A stretch of DNA of 49,209 bases, filler included, from Bipalium vagum (lineage: Eukaryota), in NCBI GenBank assembly GCA_037834085.1. It is 2 parts of 2 records of this genome, joined end to end, with 100 filler letters (N's around TTAATTAATTAA, not from the genome) between each part and the next. Parts side by side here need not be neighbours in the genome. Positions count along the whole stretch, not along the records: positions 1 to 27,508 come from JBBMKC010088242.1; 1 more part is not named here. One strand, written 5' to 3'. Of the stretch, positions 4,225 to 14,225 are shown piece after piece. Each line of letters opens with the position of its first letter. The stretch's first letter is position 1. Below the pieces are notes generated by a model. It saw nothing but the letters and a program-made list of their open reading frames with translations, had not been told where the DNA came from and did no database searches. Made by a program: the position numbers and the translations under genes.

Positions 4225-7200
4225 GTGTTGACGTCTGAGGACCATTCCCAAACCGTAGCCAGTGGGTACAAGAAGGTGCGAAGCAAAGTTTTAAAATTTC
4301 TTAAAGGAGCATGGCAGGAGGGACAGACAACACAGGGTATTGGTGCAATTGGAGTAAAAAGAAGATCAGAAATAACATTTGACAAAATGGATGGAAGACC
4401 AGGCATGTCTATAAGAATTAATGGCCAAAAATATGAATGTTTGTTGGATACGGGAGCGAAAGTAAATGTCTTGAGCCGAAGAGTTTATGAATCCCCCGGA
4501 GACATCAAATTAGAACAAACAGATGAACATCTTCGGTGCGAAAACAATAGCAGATTAAATATCTTAGGGAGCATCATGACGACTGTACAAGTAGATGAGA
4601 AAATAGAAAAAATTCGTTTCATAGTTGCAGATACAGTTGTTCCTCACGTGATTTTAGGTATTAATCTTTTGGCAAAATTTGATTTAGAGTTGAAGTGGAA
4701 GAAGACCATGAAAGAAGAAGACAATGAAAGAAAAAATCTGTGCACAATTGAAGCTAGATTTGGAAGAATTATAAACAGTGAGAAACGCTTTCATCGGGCA
4801 ATGAATGTGTTAAAGATTGACAAAAACAAGAAACTCGTCAGGTTAGTGAAGATATATGAGAATGTGTTCATGGCAGATAATTCGGATATCGAGTGCACAC
4901 ATCTGGTAAAACACAGAATTCAAACTACTACTATTTCAATTCAAACTACTATTACAGAATTCAAACTACTATTATTAATGTAAAACCTTAGCGACAGCCG
5001 GTTCATTTAGAAGAAAAGATCAATGAGACAATGAAGAACCTACTCGAAAATAATATCATTTGTAGATTCAACTCAGCGTGGAACTCTCCTATGGTCTGTA
5101 TTTGGAAAAAGGAAAAGAAGGATATCAGGATTTGTCTAAATTTCAGACAACTAAATGCAGTAACTGTTAGACCAACGTTCCCGATGCCAATACTGAAGAA
5201 ATGATGGATAGACTTGGGGGATCAAAATATTTTTCCTCAATCAATTTGGGAAACGCTTACTACCTGGTCGAACTTGACAGGGAGTTCCAAGAAAAAACGG
5301 CATTTTCAACGAGGGAAGGACAATTTTGTTTCAACGGAATGTCAATCGGTATTAAAGCAGCTTATGACAAAAGTGCTAAAATACGTTGATCATTCAATGG
5401 TTTATCTTGATATTTTAATTTTTACTGGCAGTATTGAAGAAAATTATGTGGTATTAGAAAAGGTTCTCAACAAAAAACTGAAAGCAGGATTGAAAATAAG
5501 CCCATAAAAGTGTAAGCTTTTTAGATCAGAAATCAAATTTCTAGGATATGATTAACCAGTAGGGCGTTCAGACGGATCCGGCAAAAATTGAGGCTATTCA
5601 GACATTTGAGATACCAAAATGTGTCAAAACAATGAGAATTTTTTTAGGAATTTTGCAATTATTATCGTCGCTTTATAAAGGGATATGCCGACATTTCGAG
5701 ACCATTGGAACAATTGTGCGGAACAACAGAAAAGAAAATCATATGGTCTGATAAGTGTGAACAAGCGTTTCAGAATTTAAAAACAGCTTTAAATAACACA
5801 CCTGTGTTAAGATTTCCAGATTTGAAGCAGTAGTTTTTTTGGACACAGATGCTAGTTCTGACGCAATTGGGGCTGTGTTGTCTCAAAAAGATGAATTCGG
5901 CAAGGAATTTGTAGTGGCATATGGTTCACATTTAATGAGCAAACATAAAGTTGGTTATTGCATCACTCGCAAGAAATTACTGGCGATGTATTACTTTGTA
6001 GTTATTTCAGGCACTACTTGTGCGGAAAACGATTTACATTAAGGTCGAACCATAAAGCTATTGCTTTTTTAATGGTTTCAAAGAAACCGATAACCCCACA
6101 ATTTCAGAATTGGTTAAACTTTTTGAGTGGATTGGACATAAAATTCGAATACAGGCGTGGTAGTGAACACAACAATGCAGATTCAATGTCAAGAACAAAA
6201 TGTGATCAATGCATTCAATGTCAAATTAGACATGAGGACGCAAAGACATCAAAAAATACAGTAAGATCAATCAATATTCTAAACCCAATGTTAAACAACC
6301 ATGATGAATGTGTTTCAAATAATTATAATGATAGCTCAAAGATAAACCCATTGGGTGGTAAAAAACATGAATCCCGGCGAACAAACAAAGAGAATTATTA
6401 TGTCGGTTCATGAAATTTTGACACACGCGGGTGCAGAGAAAGTAGTTTCATATTTGTGTCATAATTTCGATATGCCACGCATGTTTGAATATGTTAGAGA
6501 GGTTATTGACGGTTGGGAGGACTGCAAAAGAACCAAAACCATGACGATAAAAGTAAAATAACAAACTATTGCGATACATTCATCAGAGAAATTTGAAAAA
6601 ATATTTGTTGATGTGTGTGGACCCTTTGCAGTGACCAGAGATGGAAAGAGGTATATTTTAGGTATTATTGATCATTTCAGTCGATACATAAAACTAATGC
6701 CAATTGCAAGACAAGACGAGCAAACTATATGTAAAGCCTTAAAAGAAAAGTGGATTTTGATATTTGGAGCTCCAAAGGAAATACACGTCGACAATGGAAG
6801 AAGTTTTCTATCAGCACAAATGAAGACGCTTGCAACCCATGTCAAAGCAGTTCTAAGTGTATCAAGTTCTTATCATCATATCAGCAACGGAATGATAGAG
6901 AGACAATTCCGCACAGTAAGAGAGATGCTGATGGCGTCTCAAAAGTCAAGAAAAGGTGAAACGTGGGCCTCAATACTTCCAGATATCGAATTTACTATAA
7001 ATGCTACGGTGCAGAAAACAACAGTTAGGAGTCCAGCGGAAATTATATTCGGAAAGAAAATATTTCGTTGAAGAGTGGTATGGCAAAGATAACACATATT
7101 CAAATGATCAATATACAGCGGCAGAAAAAACAAAAGGGATTTTCGATATTGGAGAAAAAGTATTGATAAAAGCTGAAAATAGAAGAAAAATGAACAATCG

Positions 7201-7249
7201 TTTTTTGGGACCATTCACAGTGATAGAAAAAATACATCCAAGAACATAA
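4225..7249 (+). pseudogene. pol (protease-RT-RNaseH-integrase), multiple frameshifts and stops
   Basis: LLDTGA protease; SAWNSP, RICLNFRQLN, KTAFST and YLD-ILIF (YxDD has lost one Asp) in RT; TDASSDAIGAVLSQ and HNNADSMSR in RNase H; IDHFSR, VDNGRSF, NGMIER and GPF in integrase. Confidence 0.92.
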
Positions 7250-9400: not shown

Positions 9401-10034
9401 AAAGGATGTGTATGGTTCCGGAAATGTATCACGTTAGATAATTAAATATTCACTATATTCTAAATAAATTTTGGATAAATTCTACAACAGATTAATAACT
9501 TTACCATTTATTAAAAATTTGAATTATATGCCCAAAGTAAGACAAACATTTCATTAAAAAAATCAAAAATGAATTGAGTACTTCATTCAAAATTTATTTA
9601 AAAACATAATACTAAAAGTCAACGTCACATTCCATCGCCAATTACTTTCCAAAATTATGATATTAACTAAATTCGAAAAATAACTTAATATTTGTCATTA
9701 ATTTATTTCTTAAATTATCGAACCATAACAAATTCTCATTTACATATTTCCAAAACGTGAAGTATAAACGTTTGATCTTGTTTCTAGGCCAACACGAAAT
9801 TATTTATTATTACTCTTAAAACTTAACATTCTCCAATTGATTGCTTAATACAAAAGTTCATAAGTTATATATTTATCAAGAATATTAAAATATTTAAATA
9901 AAAAAAAATATTTAAAAATTAACTCAATTGGTAAAATTCAAATTTCTGATTATCGAAATTAAATGGTTAAAAACTCTTAATGTTTTGTTAACCTTTTTGC
10001 GTATATATATATATCCAAAAATTCAAAATGCAAT

Positions 10035-10040
10035 TTTATT
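10035..10040 (-). promoter_or_regulatory. Candidate polyadenylation signal of hnRNP L
   Basis: AATAAA on minus strand about 100 nt after the predicted last acceptor. AATAAA is common in this AT-rich DNA. Confidence 0.4.
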
Positions 10041-10138
10041 TGTACGAATAACAAACGTGTATATGACGTAACATTTATAATGTAACTGATGTATTTGCAA
10101 TGCCAATAATGTTCAGCATGTGTTCCTGCCTTGTGTGT

Positions 10139-10482
10139 CTAAAATTGAAAAATTTTATTTCTTGTGTTCAGAAGGTTTTGTAGTTATTTAATAAATATAT
10201 TTACCTAATGCATTGAATAGTCCACTTTGTCCGATTTTAAAGTGATAACTTGATTATTTGATATAAATGTATACATTAAAATCAGATAATCAATAATCTT
10301 AAGTGTATATTGAAGGTTTAATTCTGTTGCTCAATATGAACAAACATAAAATGTGATCAATATCACTGATTTTATTGTTATTATTGAAAATTTCATTCGT
10401 AAATAAATCAAAATGTCAAATGAAAAATTTAAACGAACAAAATGGACAGGTTCAAAGCATTGGTTGTTTATTCTCAACTCAC
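10139..10482 (-). other. Predicted 3'-UTR intron(s) of hnRNP L with alternative donors
   Basis: Stop TAG is directly followed by GTGAGT (10482). Second donor AG|GTAAAT at 10204. Pyrimidine-rich acceptor TTTTTCAATTTTAG ends at 10139. Confidence 0.6.
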
Positions 10483-12269
10483 CTAAAATCTGCGTTCAGT
10501 ATTTCTACGACGATAAGGACTATCATTACTGTCGTCATTAGTAGTTCTCGGTGCATTTTGCCTAATGGGACTCTCAGAAAAGCTTAATTTCAATTGATAA
10601 GGAAACTTTGTTCCCTCATTATTTATCATAATGTGATTGCACAAAGCAAGAGCATTGGTTGCGTCTTCGACGCTTGTCCATTGTAACAGACCTGATGAAG
10701 ACTTTTCTCGATTAGTTAATTGTAAAAATTCCGGTGGTTCTACGGCGTTATATTTATTAAACTCGGTCTGAATCATATCTAAAGTAAAATTCGGTGGTGC
10801 ATTCCAGTAGTTAATGGTTTTCGATGGCGGAAACACGCGATTTTTTTCTGCTACTTCCGGTGTGCTAAAACGATTTTCTCGACATTTTTTGTAATCCTTA
10901 AAGGAATCCGATCCATCTGGTAACTTAAAAGGATTGGGAACATCAATTATTACTGATTGTTTCGATATTTGAAACTGTAATGTTTTGCCAAAGAGAGTTT
11001 TATTGTGTAATAAATTTATCATGCGGTCAACAAAACCTATGTCGCTCATTTGAACCATAGCCGACCCCTCTTTGCTTTTTAGAAATTTTATTTTCATTAC
11101 GTTTCCATAAATACAAAACAGATTAAAAAGAATATCGCAATTTGTCGAGTCGAGATTGAGCCCGTAAACCATGGCAACCGCGGGACCAGAACCAAAATTC
11201 CTATCTACCATTGAATTATGACCGTAATCGTCTTCATAATTGATGTCGCGATGAATATTTTTATTTAACGGAACCATCCTACCAGAATAGTCTCGAACAT
11301 CTTCGTAATATCGTGACTCTCTATTATCAGCACCACCACGACTGTACAAGCCATTAAACGATTCTTCTCTACGATCTGGCATTTCGTAATCACGACTCAT
11401 TGGTGCTCTCGAGTGTATATTCGATCTATTAGGCAGACCCAGCAAAGAATGTGATGAACGTAATTCTAAGTTTTGAGCTTCAAAGTCAAAACTATCTTCT
11501 GAATTTTCAATAACATTAACACGGTTTGTTGTTGCATATTCAATTTTCAATGTGCAACAACCAGAATATATATCAGCACCATTTAAATTACGTTTCACCT
11601 TTACTGCATCTTCGATTGACACAAATTCCACAAGTGCCTTCAGAAATTAAATACGAAATCAAGAAATCAATGAACGGAAGAATACAAAGAAAACCATACC
11701 TGTATAAATGATGCCTTTCTGTTAATGAAAATCCGAACAACCCTACCATGGGGTTTACAAATTTTATGCAGAACATCCACGGTAATAGGATATATAGCAT
11801 CATAAATAAAAAATATCAAAACTTTATTATTGGTGGGCAATGATTCATTTGGCATCCGAGTCCTTTTATTAACATGTTCAGAAGTACTAAAGTTAACTTT
11901 TGCTGGTCTATTTGCAATACAAATAAAGTCATTGCGAAACCTAAATTTTTATTGAATTTGGAAATTATACTAATTAACTACAACCTTTTCACAACTTCTT
12001 GTGCTGAACTAAGAAGTTCATATTCTACTAAAGCTTGGCGTTTTTTAGGAATCATTGCGATTTCTCTAATTATTCCAAATTTTTCCAAGGCTCGACATAC
12101 ATCAATTTCAAGAGTATGCTCTCCTAACTCTCTAATGTGGATTACTTTAGATGGTTGAATATCTTCCCAATCTTCTGGTCTAGACCTTTTGCGATTGAAA
12201 TTATCCTATAATGATTGAATAGTTATGCGAATAAGAAATCCTAAACAATTTCACTTAATTACTTACCAT
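10483..12269 (-). CDS. HNRNPL: Heterogeneous nuclear ribonucleoprotein L (4 RRMs, 539 aa). Exons 12269-12267, 12205-11985, 11940-11700, 11637-10483
   Basis: RRM1 PSKVIHIRELG...MIPKKRQALVEY; RRM2 NKVL...YPITVDVLHKIC...NGADIYSGCCTLKIEYA; RRM3 MVYGLN...FNLFCIYGNVMKIKFLKSKEGSAMVQM; RRM4 PPSKTINYWNAP...ALALCNH...PYQLKLSFS. Three GT-AG introns (61, 44, 62 nt) restore one open frame of 1620 nt. Confidence 0.93.
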
Positions 12270-12659: not shown

Positions 12660-14225
12660 TAGGGTCGGAAATAATTTAGTGACACATTACAAAAGTTACT
12701 AAAATCGATATTTTAAAGATTTTGTAGTCTTAATAATGTCAGATAAATGTGTGTTTTTAGAGTATCTGAATGAATGTTTCGTTTAAAATAATAAAAATTA
12801 TAAAAAATACTTGGCAATCAATATAATTTGAGTAATATACCAAATATGTCAGAAATTTAAATTTGGTGACACTTCAAAATGTAACCAGAATTTTATGGTT
12901 TAATTAATCATGATTCCAAGGCAAATGATTATATTTCTTGAAATACTTTATAAATAACGTTTAATATTTACAATGATGTTCTTTAATCTTCACAACTGTC
13001 TTTAATCGCTGAGGAATTGACTAGTGCAAATTACTAATCACTTTTGTTGGAATATCGTTCCATAATTTGAGGGACATTACATAAATCTTCGGATCACATT
13101 ATATTGAATTCAAAATAACAGTTGTCTTCAATATGAATCACATTTCTGATGATATTGATGTCATGTGAATGCGGTGTTCAGTCACTAAAAAGACAATCTT
13201 TTTCAGTTTCAGATACGAAATTTTAGATTGCAACGTATGACAGAGTTTACCATCTTTTATGAAGACGAAGTCGCTTACATACATATTCTGTAGTCCTTCT
13301 TCCAATACTATTTGATAAGCAGTTGAATCCAATTACAATGGTTACTAATGAGTATTATACTGCAGTCACCTCTTATGGCCCTCCATATCAAAATAGATTT
13401 GAACTGTCTCGGATATTTTAAAGGGTATATTTGGGGTCAAATCTATGCCAACGTGGTCTTCTCACATACCGGTTATAAGATGAACTGATTTCAATGCGAC
13501 ATTCATCAGAAAAATAATATTTTTCCATTGTTCACTATCCCAATTGTTGTAGGTCTTGTACCACAAAACATGTCTTTTCATATTACGGTTACCAATGAAC
13601 GTTTTGCACTCAGCAATTCTTCCTGGAAGTCCCGATCTGTTTAGATACGATTGTATAGTTCTTATAGTAACACTTCTATTAAGTCCACTTTCGTTGAAGA
13701 CTTCAGCAGCAGTGAGAAATTGATTCTTCTTAAGAGTGCGATTTAGAAAACGTGTCTCCCTTTCCGATAAATTTTTTGGTCGACGAAATCTCTTTTTATG
13801 TGATATTAACCCAGTCTTTTGGATTTTCACCCAGACCTTTCTGTCACTTGTCCGATTAATATTGAGAACCTTACATTGATTCATATTTTAACTATTTCTA
13901 AAAAAAATATTATAAATTATTAAATTAAACATATTAAATTGCATTTTAAAAAAGTTACATTAAAAAATGTAATATTTAGAAATATATTAACTTACATAAT
14001 AAATGTATACAAAATTTGAATAAGTTGTAAAAAATTATTAAATGAAATAATTATTTAGCTTATTTTAACATATATTAATACGAATGCAGCGTTAATTAAA
14101 TATCATATCTACATTTCCAGGCTATCATAATATCCATTTGAAAAAAGTTATAAAGCTTTTATTTGACTAAAAATTGTTAATTATATTACTTTTTAAAAAG
14201 TGTTACTAACTTATTTCTTACCCTG
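12660..14225 (-). mobile_element. Tc1-like transposon with both TIRs, TA TSD and defective transposase (about 13884-12960)
   Basis: TA|TAGGGTCGGAAATAATTTAGTGACAC versus TA|CAGGGTAAGAAATAAGTTAGTAACAC (reverse complement of right end). ORFs with RPKNLSERETRFL, SVTIRTIQSYL, WKNIIF(SDE) and MDSTAYQIVLEE. Confidence 0.88.

Follow-up and report, generated by a model that had tools for sequence, protein, structure and literature searches.

How is the 3' end of an hnRNP L-like gene of the flatworm Bipalium vagum built, in which the stop codon runs directly into a consensus splice donor, and might this arrangement let the protein feed back on its own mRNA? The window, that is, the whole stretch of DNA analysed, comprises 49,209 nucleotides with filler; the gene lies on the minus strand of its first piece of 27,508 bases, which also provided the background for motif counts. 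The gene model rests on protein comparisons made exon by exon, and the 3' regions of the gene and of a paralogue were compared by local alignments with shuffle controls, intron lengths differing between the paralogues. Conservation is thus read from two sequences, the gene and its paralogue, plus one protein. The coordinates of all features are collected in Table 1.

Table 1. Features of the hnRNP L-like gene and its 3' end (positions along the window)
Feature	Positions	Strand	Basis
Coding exon 2	11985..12205	-	sequence; tblastn match 12205-11984, 82% identical to P0002
Coding exon 3	11700..11940	-	sequence; tblastn match to P0002 11942-11808
Last coding exon: end of RRM2, RRM3, RRM4, low-complexity C-terminus, stop TAG 10485-10483	10483..11637	-	ORF, Pfam, relatives
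Putative terminal intron, 344 nt, acceptor TTTTTCAATTTTAG	10139..10482	-	motif positions; same donor and acceptor in paralogue
AATAAA inside the intron, 10 nt past the stop	10467..10472	-	hexamer position
Inner acceptor motif CAACAG	10324..10329	-	motif position
Imperfect hairpin, within the proposed cassette	10244..10298	-	self inverted match 10250-10293, 86%
Inner donor motif AG/GTAAAT (GT 10204-10203), 66 nt before the acceptor, AG/GT fusion	10199..10206	-	7/8 consensus
CA-rich terminal exon; 3' limit approximate (conservation ends)	10017..10138	-	paralogue alignment, ACA count
Open frame in the terminal exon, 20 codons and TAA	10075..10137	-	matches P0002 C-terminal tail
Second AG, CAG/GAACAC, 13 nt inside the terminal exon; candidate acceptor	10126..10127	-	conserved in paralogue; tail frame phase 0

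Going by its predicted protein, the gene is a member of the hnRNP L / PTB family of RRM proteins, with PTB-type RRMs in the hnRNP L order. The minus-strand ORF 11631..10483 encodes 382 aa, in which Pfam finds RRM_5 (E 2.5e-37), RRM_10 (E 1.7e-10) and RRM_1 (E 5.3e-9), RRM_8 being weak (20.1 bits vs a cut-off of 26.2). Among named proteins, hnRNP L of flatworms comes closest, at about 43% identity, and all the named matches, from flatworms, molluscs and arthropods, are annotated as hnRNP L or hnRNP L-like, with 36-55% identity in local alignments. The protein P0002, deposited for a relative, matches the last coding exon over 11640-10528 (tblastn; 68% identity over the big exon). Exon 3 holds an in-frame internal GT at 11822-11821, where P0002 is without 41 RRM2 residues, and an ATG at 12269-12267 adjoins the 61-nt intron upstream of exon 2. 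The coding introns measure 61, 44 and 62 nt, and their true donors can be weak (GTTGTA, GTATGG). In the single sequencing run that covers the locus, 100% of the sampled words are present, those of introns among them, so that the run is probably of DNA.

According to the original prediction, the stop codon is fused to a consensus donor (TAG/GTGAGT) at 10482, from which an intron would be spliced to an acceptor at 10139. The fusion is confirmed and its frame is right: the in-frame TAG of the 382-aa RRM ORF is followed at once by GTGAGT at 10482-10477 on the minus strand. In the 27,508-base piece each strand has a single GTGAGT, and a stop followed by GTRAGT is found only once in all, at 10485-10477; the fusion is therefore not a background motif. 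TTTTAG, by comparison, is counted 56 times in the same piece (both strands). With the donor 0 nt downstream of TAG and the acceptor at 10139, the arrangement fits, on sequence alone, a stop-codon-proximal 3'-UTR intron, which at 344 nt would be five to eight times longer than the coding introns of the gene.

Support for this intron comes from a paralogue in the same genome (G000:C60963), 63% identical at the amino acid level. Its last coding exon also ends in TAG/GTGAGT, and its terminal intron (2884-3300 of L004, 417 nt) closes with a T-rich acceptor tract almost identical to that of the gene, and then ACA. The synonymous sites of the pair are saturated, identity over the 382 codons of the last coding exon being 59% for all nucleotides and 39% (0.387) for third positions, yet donor, TAG stop, acceptor tract and downstream exon are common to both genes. 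The acceptor and downstream exon align with a local score of 52 (200 shuffles: mean 21.6, sd 3.0, maximum 38); the intron bodies are not alignable between the paralogues (score 23 vs 23.6 +/- 2.8 in shuffles). P0002, moreover, connects the same two sites. In a third hnRNP L-like gene, more distantly related, the stop is TGA and no donor follows. The outer intron 10482-10139 is very likely genuine and is predicted to be removed from the mRNA. It is very unlikely that there is no splicing at all and that the mRNA ends in, or runs through, the apparent intron, GTGAGT being a U1 site or fortuitous and the conserved block a non-exon element. The AATAAA that the original prediction had placed near 10470 is present (10472-10467), as such an early end would have it, but it is not conserved, the nearest such hexamer of the paralogue intron being an ATTAAA about 80 nt past the stop; and the joint conservation of TAG/GTGAGT and of the pyrimidine tract with its AG, around a fully diverged intervening sequence, counts against this explanation, as does the junction in P0002.

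Within the intron, donors 10482 and 10204 were proposed to compete for the acceptor at 10139, with or without a cassette exon, such that use of the inner donor would leave a junction about 120-280 nt past the stop and lead to NMD and negative feedback. Every motif of this scheme is found on the minus strand where it had been placed (10204..10139 is 66 nt, 10482..10139 is 344 nt, and 10323..10205 is 119 nt); the inner donor has 7/8 consensus positions, the 66-nt intron is indeed typical in size when set beside the coding introns, and where introns are generally short, as in this genome, 66 nt may be more readily defined than 344 nt. The combination of 3'-UTR splicing and NMD is, besides, a known autoregulatory route, described for hnRNP A1 and hnRNP D/DL (PMC7547044). 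Against it stands the comparison with the paralogue, which leaves the switch unsupported: the intron body is unaligned and not conserved, unlike known poison exons, and the paralogue is without any internal site at 7/8 or more, its best donor-like site reaching only 6/8 at a different distance (195 nt). Donor-like sites, defined as AG/GTRAGT matches at at least 7/8 positions, number 11 on the minus strand of the piece, and 0.11 would be expected by chance in the 278 nt between the two donors. CAACAG at 10324, a motif with 17 copies in the piece (both strands), has a poor pyrimidine tract and fails the filter of at least 9/14 pyrimidines upstream, which three other AGs pass; and EJC-dependent NMD in this animal is an assumption. 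No conserved alternative exon or site that would give a junction >50 nt past the stop was found against the paralogue by a scan that sees strong sites, and because the true donors of this gene can be weak, weak inner donors may have escaped the scan. Among the papers listed by literature searches, none dealt with the splicing of hnRNP L in flatworms, which is not proof of absence. Taken together, the NMD switch is quite unlikely.

The hairpin inside the proposed cassette has an MFE of -13.3 kcal/mol (z -2.6), and 3/200 shuffles fold as well. The inner donor might alternatively serve recursive splicing, the fused AG/GT at 10205/10204 allowing the removal of 278 nt and then of 66 nt with the same final product. 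An acceptor-like TTAG abutting GTAAAT and the unusual length of the terminal intron agree with it, but the pyrimidine tract is modest (9/14) and no fused site exists in the 417-nt intron of the paralogue; recursive splicing is very improbable.

The terminal exon is the most constrained part of the locus. In the alignment to its counterpart in the paralogue, 93/127 columns are identical, which exceeds the conservation of the coding sequence, and third positions in the frame of a possible tail (see below) are identical in 14/20 codons (P = 0.005 against 0.387). The constraint therefore acts on the RNA or DNA sequence and not on a peptide alone. The exon is unusually rich in ACA/CA, with 10 ACA in 122 nt (mean of the piece 2.0; 0.3% of 2,739 windows reach 10), and so is that of the paralogue, with 15 in 171 nt (mean 3.2; 1.7% of 404 windows reach 15); an AATAAA lies near its end, at 10040-10035. 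That the conserved block derives from a repeat or transposon was considered and rejected, since a DNA search of the 440-Mb assembly gave only the block itself and its own inverted repeat. A search of Rfam with 9925-10600 gave no match, and the two terminal exons share a weak consensus fold (-3.5 kcal/mol, 9 pairs, 0 compensatory changes), as is expected for a single-stranded protein-binding site. The preference of hnRNP L is for CA-rich RNA (PMC7547044); by its composition, binding of hnRNP L would be the most likely function of the exon. Judged by the paralogue comparison, there is a real conserved 3'-end module at this hnRNP L-like gene.

Whether the terminal exon is plain UTR, as the original prediction had it, is another matter: in this genome it would be 3' UTR, but as the most constrained part of the locus, and read as coding in the deposited protein of a relative, it is not captured by that term. 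There are several hints that the exon might somewhere be translated, and these count against a pure-UTR model. P0002 (UniParc UPI00060E7393) runs from the penultimate residue of the ORF straight into a tail that matches 10140-10078 (tblastn, 14/21 identical, E 3.6e-4 in a 6.7-kb search space) and stops at the same place as this frame. In the paralogue comparison, identity is 50/60 before the TAA and 36/57 after it, with differences distributed 2/2/6 by codon position (identities 18/20, 18/20 and 14/20); the indels, read off the alignment, are multiples of three; the tail frame of the paralogue is in phase with its own TAG, and phase 0 would be reached here as well through the conserved CAG at 10126. 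The exon might therefore (also) encode an alternative tail of 20 residues, up to the TAA at 10077-10075, the fusion toggling between a tail-less and a tailed protein. This reading is unlikely. TAG is the last codon before the donor in both genes of this genome, splicing to the 10139 acceptor puts the tail frame at +1 to the stop, and an enumeration of GT-AG, GC-AG and AT-AC introns found no plausible in-frame route into the tail from upstream of the stop, the closest candidates starting from weak donors (GC at 10561, GT at 10508 and 10511 with a poor acceptor). Third positions are conserved far beyond those of the true coding sequence, and P0002, for which only a UniParc id is at hand and whose RRM2 is short of 41 residues, may be a gene model and not a transcript. 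A protein-fragment word search with its C-terminal part of 122 aa gave 2 candidates, 0 of them at E <= 1e-5.

Two ways of reconciling frame and stop were rejected. One T fewer in the four-T run before the stop would bring the GTGAGT donor into phase with the tail, but an assembly error at this place is disfavoured by the paralogue, which has TAG/GTGAGT without the homopolymer, and by the protein P0001, which ends likewise, in the same two residues and stop as the 382-aa ORF. Nor is TAG a general sense codon: three hnRNP L-like ORFs, 387, 471 and 582 codons long, contain 0 in frame. A dual use of the exon, as CA-rich RNA element and as alternative tail, could be reached through an unconventional cut 7 nt upstream of the canonical donor, the same heptamer ending both exon and intron, or through recoding of the junction UAG, which comes after a run of four U, with the tail exactly +1 and that of the paralogue in frame with UAG. 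Highly improbable as it is, if true it would mean that both paralogues have conserved a stop/donor fusion that toggles between two forms of the protein.

The reading preferred here, to which I assign a probability of roughly 55%, is that the stop-fused terminal intron and the constrained CA-rich UTR exon form a putative hnRNP L-type platform for feedback. The donor fused to the stop would place an exon-exon junction at the very end of the reading frame, and splicing would append some 120 nt of terminal exon, from 10138 to about 10017 and with the AATAAA at 10040, which would serve as 3' UTR in this genome. Being CA/ACA-rich and unstructured, and strongly constrained at the nucleotide level, this exon may act as an RNA element bound by hnRNP L-type proteins, namely the gene's own product and that of the paralogue, whose level would in turn influence, by auto- and cross-regulation, either how the terminal intron is removed or what becomes of the mRNA. 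The broad idea of a feedback at the 3' end, which was part of the original prediction, thereby gains indirect support from the conserved CA-rich exon; the specific NMD switch does not. The direction of any feedback through the exon is inferred, and it counts against the model that a junction at the stop codon gives decay nothing obvious to act on.

Should the module work as proposed, hnRNP L feedback via its own CA-rich RNA would predate or parallel the vertebrate poison exon, with a different build, i.e. a stop-fused intron and a terminal exon that is itself the binding site. The module also offers a test object of about 470 nt for several questions: how animals with short introns deal with a long terminal one, whether introns abutting stop codons are regulatory, and whether flatworm NMD reads junctions. 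For annotation it is a warning, for nowhere in the locus is constraint stronger than in this 'UTR' exon, which the deposited protein of a relative reads as coding.

Four known systems invite comparison. RRM and mRNA-binding genes are over-represented among those with an intron <50 nt past the stop; 167 of these introns are conserved between vertebrates as far apart as zebrafish and human, and the NMD-sensitive ones lie mainly at least 36 nt from the stop (PMC7310861). The flatworm gene resembles these vertebrate cases in encoding an RRM protein, in the distance of its putative intron from the stop and in the conservation of that position between related genes; it differs in that the distance is 0 nt, the stop being the last codon of the exon, and in the organism, a flatworm.

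Human hnRNP L autoregulates by including its own stop-containing exon (PMC6885243, citing Rossbach et al. 2009). Here the likeness lies in the protein family, in a CA-rich cis element as the presumed handle and in the presence of two paralogues which could cross-regulate. The vertebrate device, however, is an internal poison cassette exon, whereas the flatworm gene is without a conserved cassette, and what is CA-rich and conserved there lies past the stop, in the form of the terminal exon itself. Likewise, the feedback proposed here would share with hnRNP A1 and hnRNP D/DL (PMC7547044) its route via 3'-UTR splicing in an hnRNP gene. Their junctions, however, lie >50 nt past the stop, while the well-supported junction of the flatworm is at the stop, and their NMD geometry could be reached here only via the unsupported inner donor.

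Finally, hnRNP L bound near stop codons shields mRNAs from NMD (PMC7407380). As in this shielding by hnRNP L and PTBP1, a CA-rich cluster would, after splicing, directly follow the termination codon, and by analogy hnRNP L might shield the flatworm mRNA at its terminal exon; but shielding is described for long human 3' UTRs, that of the flatworm would be about 120 nt, and the feedback would then be positive, not negative.

The hnRNP L-like gene was modelled by reading its exons off the sequence and comparing each of them singly with P0002, one of two unnamed deposited proteins that are the nearest relatives of the product, and database searches were run for each exon apart. The last coding exon holds an open frame of 382 residues matching RRM_5 (E 2.5e-37) and RRM_10 (E 1.7e-10); among named proteins, hnRNP L of parasitic flatworms comes nearest (about 43% identity), and the two unnamed proteins are nearer still (P0001 70%, P0002 67%). 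An in-frame GT follows N-N-K codons in exon 3 (11821-11822, minus strand), and P0002 lacks 41 residues, half of RRM2, exactly from this GT at 11822 to the normal exon end; the GT could serve as an alternative 5' splice site by which part of RRM2 is lost, or the gap in P0002 could be an artefact of its gene model. With its 272,664 contigs the assembly amounts to 440.8 Mb; the piece bearing the gene is one entire contig. It also carries retroelement remains at 6613-7249 on the plus strand (integrase core rve, E 4e-12, then a weak Tf2-1-type SH3 match below cut-off). A Tc1/Tc3-type transposase HTH fragment (13465-13884, minus strand; E 1.6e-4, below the Pfam cut-off) lies about 1.2 kb before the ATG of the hnRNP L gene, on its upstream side.

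Features of the hnRNP L-like gene and of its 3' end, in positions of the whole stretch
Feature	Position	Strand	Basis	Remark
Start codon ATG	12269-12267	minus	sequence reading	61-nt intron next
Coding exon	12205-11985	minus	sequence reading and exon match to P0002	44-nt intron next
Coding exon 3	11940-11700	minus	sequence reading and exon match to P0002	62-nt intron next
Large last coding exon	11637-10483	minus	sequence reading and exon match to P0002	
In-frame stop TAG	10485-10483	minus		adjoins GTGAGT at 10482
AATAAA	10472	minus	sequence	
CAACAG	ends 10324	minus	sequence	
Inner donor AG/GTAAAT	10204	minus	sequence	
Acceptor TTTTTCAATTTTAG	ends 10139	minus	sequence	

All motifs of the original prediction were recovered at their positions. 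The fusion of stop codon and donor is not background: in the 27,508 bases of the piece each strand has a single GTGAGT, and the only stop directly before a GTRAGT is the gene's own. A protein search of the same genome returned a paralogue (63% identity over 366 residues; locus L004, 1501-3470, on contig C60963), whose last coding exon likewise ends TAG/GTGAGT; its terminal intron is 417 nt long and closes at L004 position 3300, the G of the acceptor, on a T-rich tract and AG near-identical to those of the gene, then ACA, followed by a homologous and CA-rich terminal exon. From the acceptor downstream, the two genes align with a local score of 52, against a mean of 21.6 (sd 3.0, maximum 38) in 200 shuffles, whereas the intron bodies score 23 against 23.6 +/- 2.8. 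Conservation of donor, acceptor and next exon, together with divergence of the body between them, is the signature of a genuine intron, and the predicted intron from the 10482 donor to the 10139 acceptor is thus very probably real. A third, distant hnRNP L-like gene (31% identity; L005, 897-2645, on contig C199518), with a frame of 582 codons open in one piece, ends in TGA without an adjoining donor, so that the device is specific to the gene and its paralogue. Within the terminal intron, an imperfect hairpin (10244-10298, minus strand; MFE -13.3 kcal/mol, z -2.6), corresponding to a self inverted match of 86% at 10250-10293, was not found in the paralogue.

The exon behind this intron is unusually constrained. 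Across the last coding exon 236 of 382 aligned residues are identical, with 59% nucleotide and 39% third-position identity, synonymous sites being essentially saturated between the paralogues; in the terminal exon, 93 of 127 aligned columns are identical, and 79 of 102 when the count is confined to the first 150 columns of the alignment. At about 10017, a little past an AATAAA at 10040-10035, the similarity tails off, which sets the exon at about 120 nt. The block is not a repeat, has no match in Rfam and shows no conserved fold. It is exceptionally rich in ACA/CA: its 122 nt contain 10 ACA where the mean is 2.0 (0.3% of 2,739 windows reach 10), and in the paralogue 171 nt contain 15 where the mean is 3.2 (1.7% of 404 windows). 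When it sits near stop codons, hnRNP L is reported in PMC7407380 to protect mRNAs from NMD. The exon reads most simply as a putative platform to which the product of the gene itself and that of the paralogue would bind.

The same block could instead be coding, for P0002 (521 aa, UniParc UPI00060E7393) goes on past the large exon without a break into a 20-residue tail. This tail matches the frame 10137-10078 at 14 of 21 residues, counting the codon over the acceptor; its last ten residues are all identical and its stop coincides (E 3.6e-4 in a 6.7-kb search space). P0001, by contrast, shares the final two residues and the stop of the gene's ORF. Identity between the paralogues is 50/60 up to the TAA against 36/57 after it, differences in the tail frame fall 2/2/6 by codon position, and the alignment indels, read by eye, are multiples of three. 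Against this, the last codon before the donor is TAG in both genes, and TAG is not a general sense codon, being absent in frame from three long ORFs; third positions of the tail frame are identical at 14 of 20 against the 39% coding background (P = 0.005); and P0002 may itself be a gene model and also has an incomplete RRM2. Splicing to 10139 would leave the tail frame at +1 with respect to TAG, and when all GT-AG, GC-AG and AT-AC introns were listed no convincing in-frame route led into it from upstream of the stop, the nearest candidates being a weak GC donor (10561) and two weak GT donors (10508, 10511) paired with a poor acceptor. One heptamer terminates both the coding exon and the terminal intron, and cutting 7 bases before the canonical donor would bring the tail into frame, but with an AT...AG intron. 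The paralogue's tail frame is in phase with its TAG and open for 51 codons, and the gene would acquire that phase through a conserved CAG/ 13 nt inside the exon (AG at 10127-10126). Given the evidence against coding, translation of the tail in Bipalium vagum is a minority possibility, and a rather improbable one. Separately, the frame continuing directly from the junction (10138-9977, minus strand; GC roughly 25-30%) is open for 53 codons, which would happen by chance at about 0.01 if, as a rough guess, some 9% of codons were stops; it differs from the conserved tail frame over most of its length.

The original prediction placed an NMD switch within the intron, with the donor at 10204, with or without a cassette exon at 10323-10205, leaving a junction 119 or about 280 nt downstream of the stop. 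Its geometry is as described, and the 66-nt inner intron has the native size of this gene's introns, which 344 nt has not. Taken singly, though, the inner signals are weak: 11 minus-strand sites match AG/GTRAGT at 7 or more of 8 positions, which predicts 0.11 for the 278 nt in question, or about one such donor by chance in nine stretches of that length; CAACAG occurs 17 times in the piece, and the copy at 10324 fails a simple test for a pyrimidine tract, which three other AGs pass. The paralogue's intron has no internal donor-like site at 7/8 or better (the best is 6/8, 195 nt from the acceptor) and no equivalent of the inner elements, and the would-be cassette is unconserved, unlike known poison exons. 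Some genuine donors of the gene are themselves weak (GTTGTA, GTATGG), so that weak alternatives could escape such scans. Apart from the intron size, nothing in the comparison with one paralogue and two proteins supports the switch. The fused AG/GT at 10205/10204 could also be a recursive splice site, but it is absent from the paralogue.

The reading I favour, at a probability of roughly 0.55 as a whole, infers splicing, hnRNP L binding and the sign of feedback from the anatomy, conservation and composition of the module. Removal of the terminal intron would place the conserved CA-rich exon directly behind the stop codon and supply the poly(A) signal; hnRNP L-type proteins would bind that exon, whether in the pre-mRNA, just past the 3' splice site, or in the mRNA, and their binding would adjust how the intron is removed or what becomes of the message.

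Among the leading matches of literature searches on flatworms, nothing concerned hnRNP L. Human hnRNP L has, in the account of PMC6885243, an internal poison exon, whereas the locus here has no conserved cassette. By its sequence it belongs with the stop-proximal 3'-UTR introns known from RNA-binding protein genes of vertebrates, described in PMC7310861 as common, enriched in RRM-protein genes and NMD-sensitive in part only, mostly at 36 nt or more from the stop. A junction 0 nt from the stop, as predicted here, should be silent for NMD. Among the closest known systems are hnRNP A1 and D/DL, with their 3'-UTR-based autoregulation.
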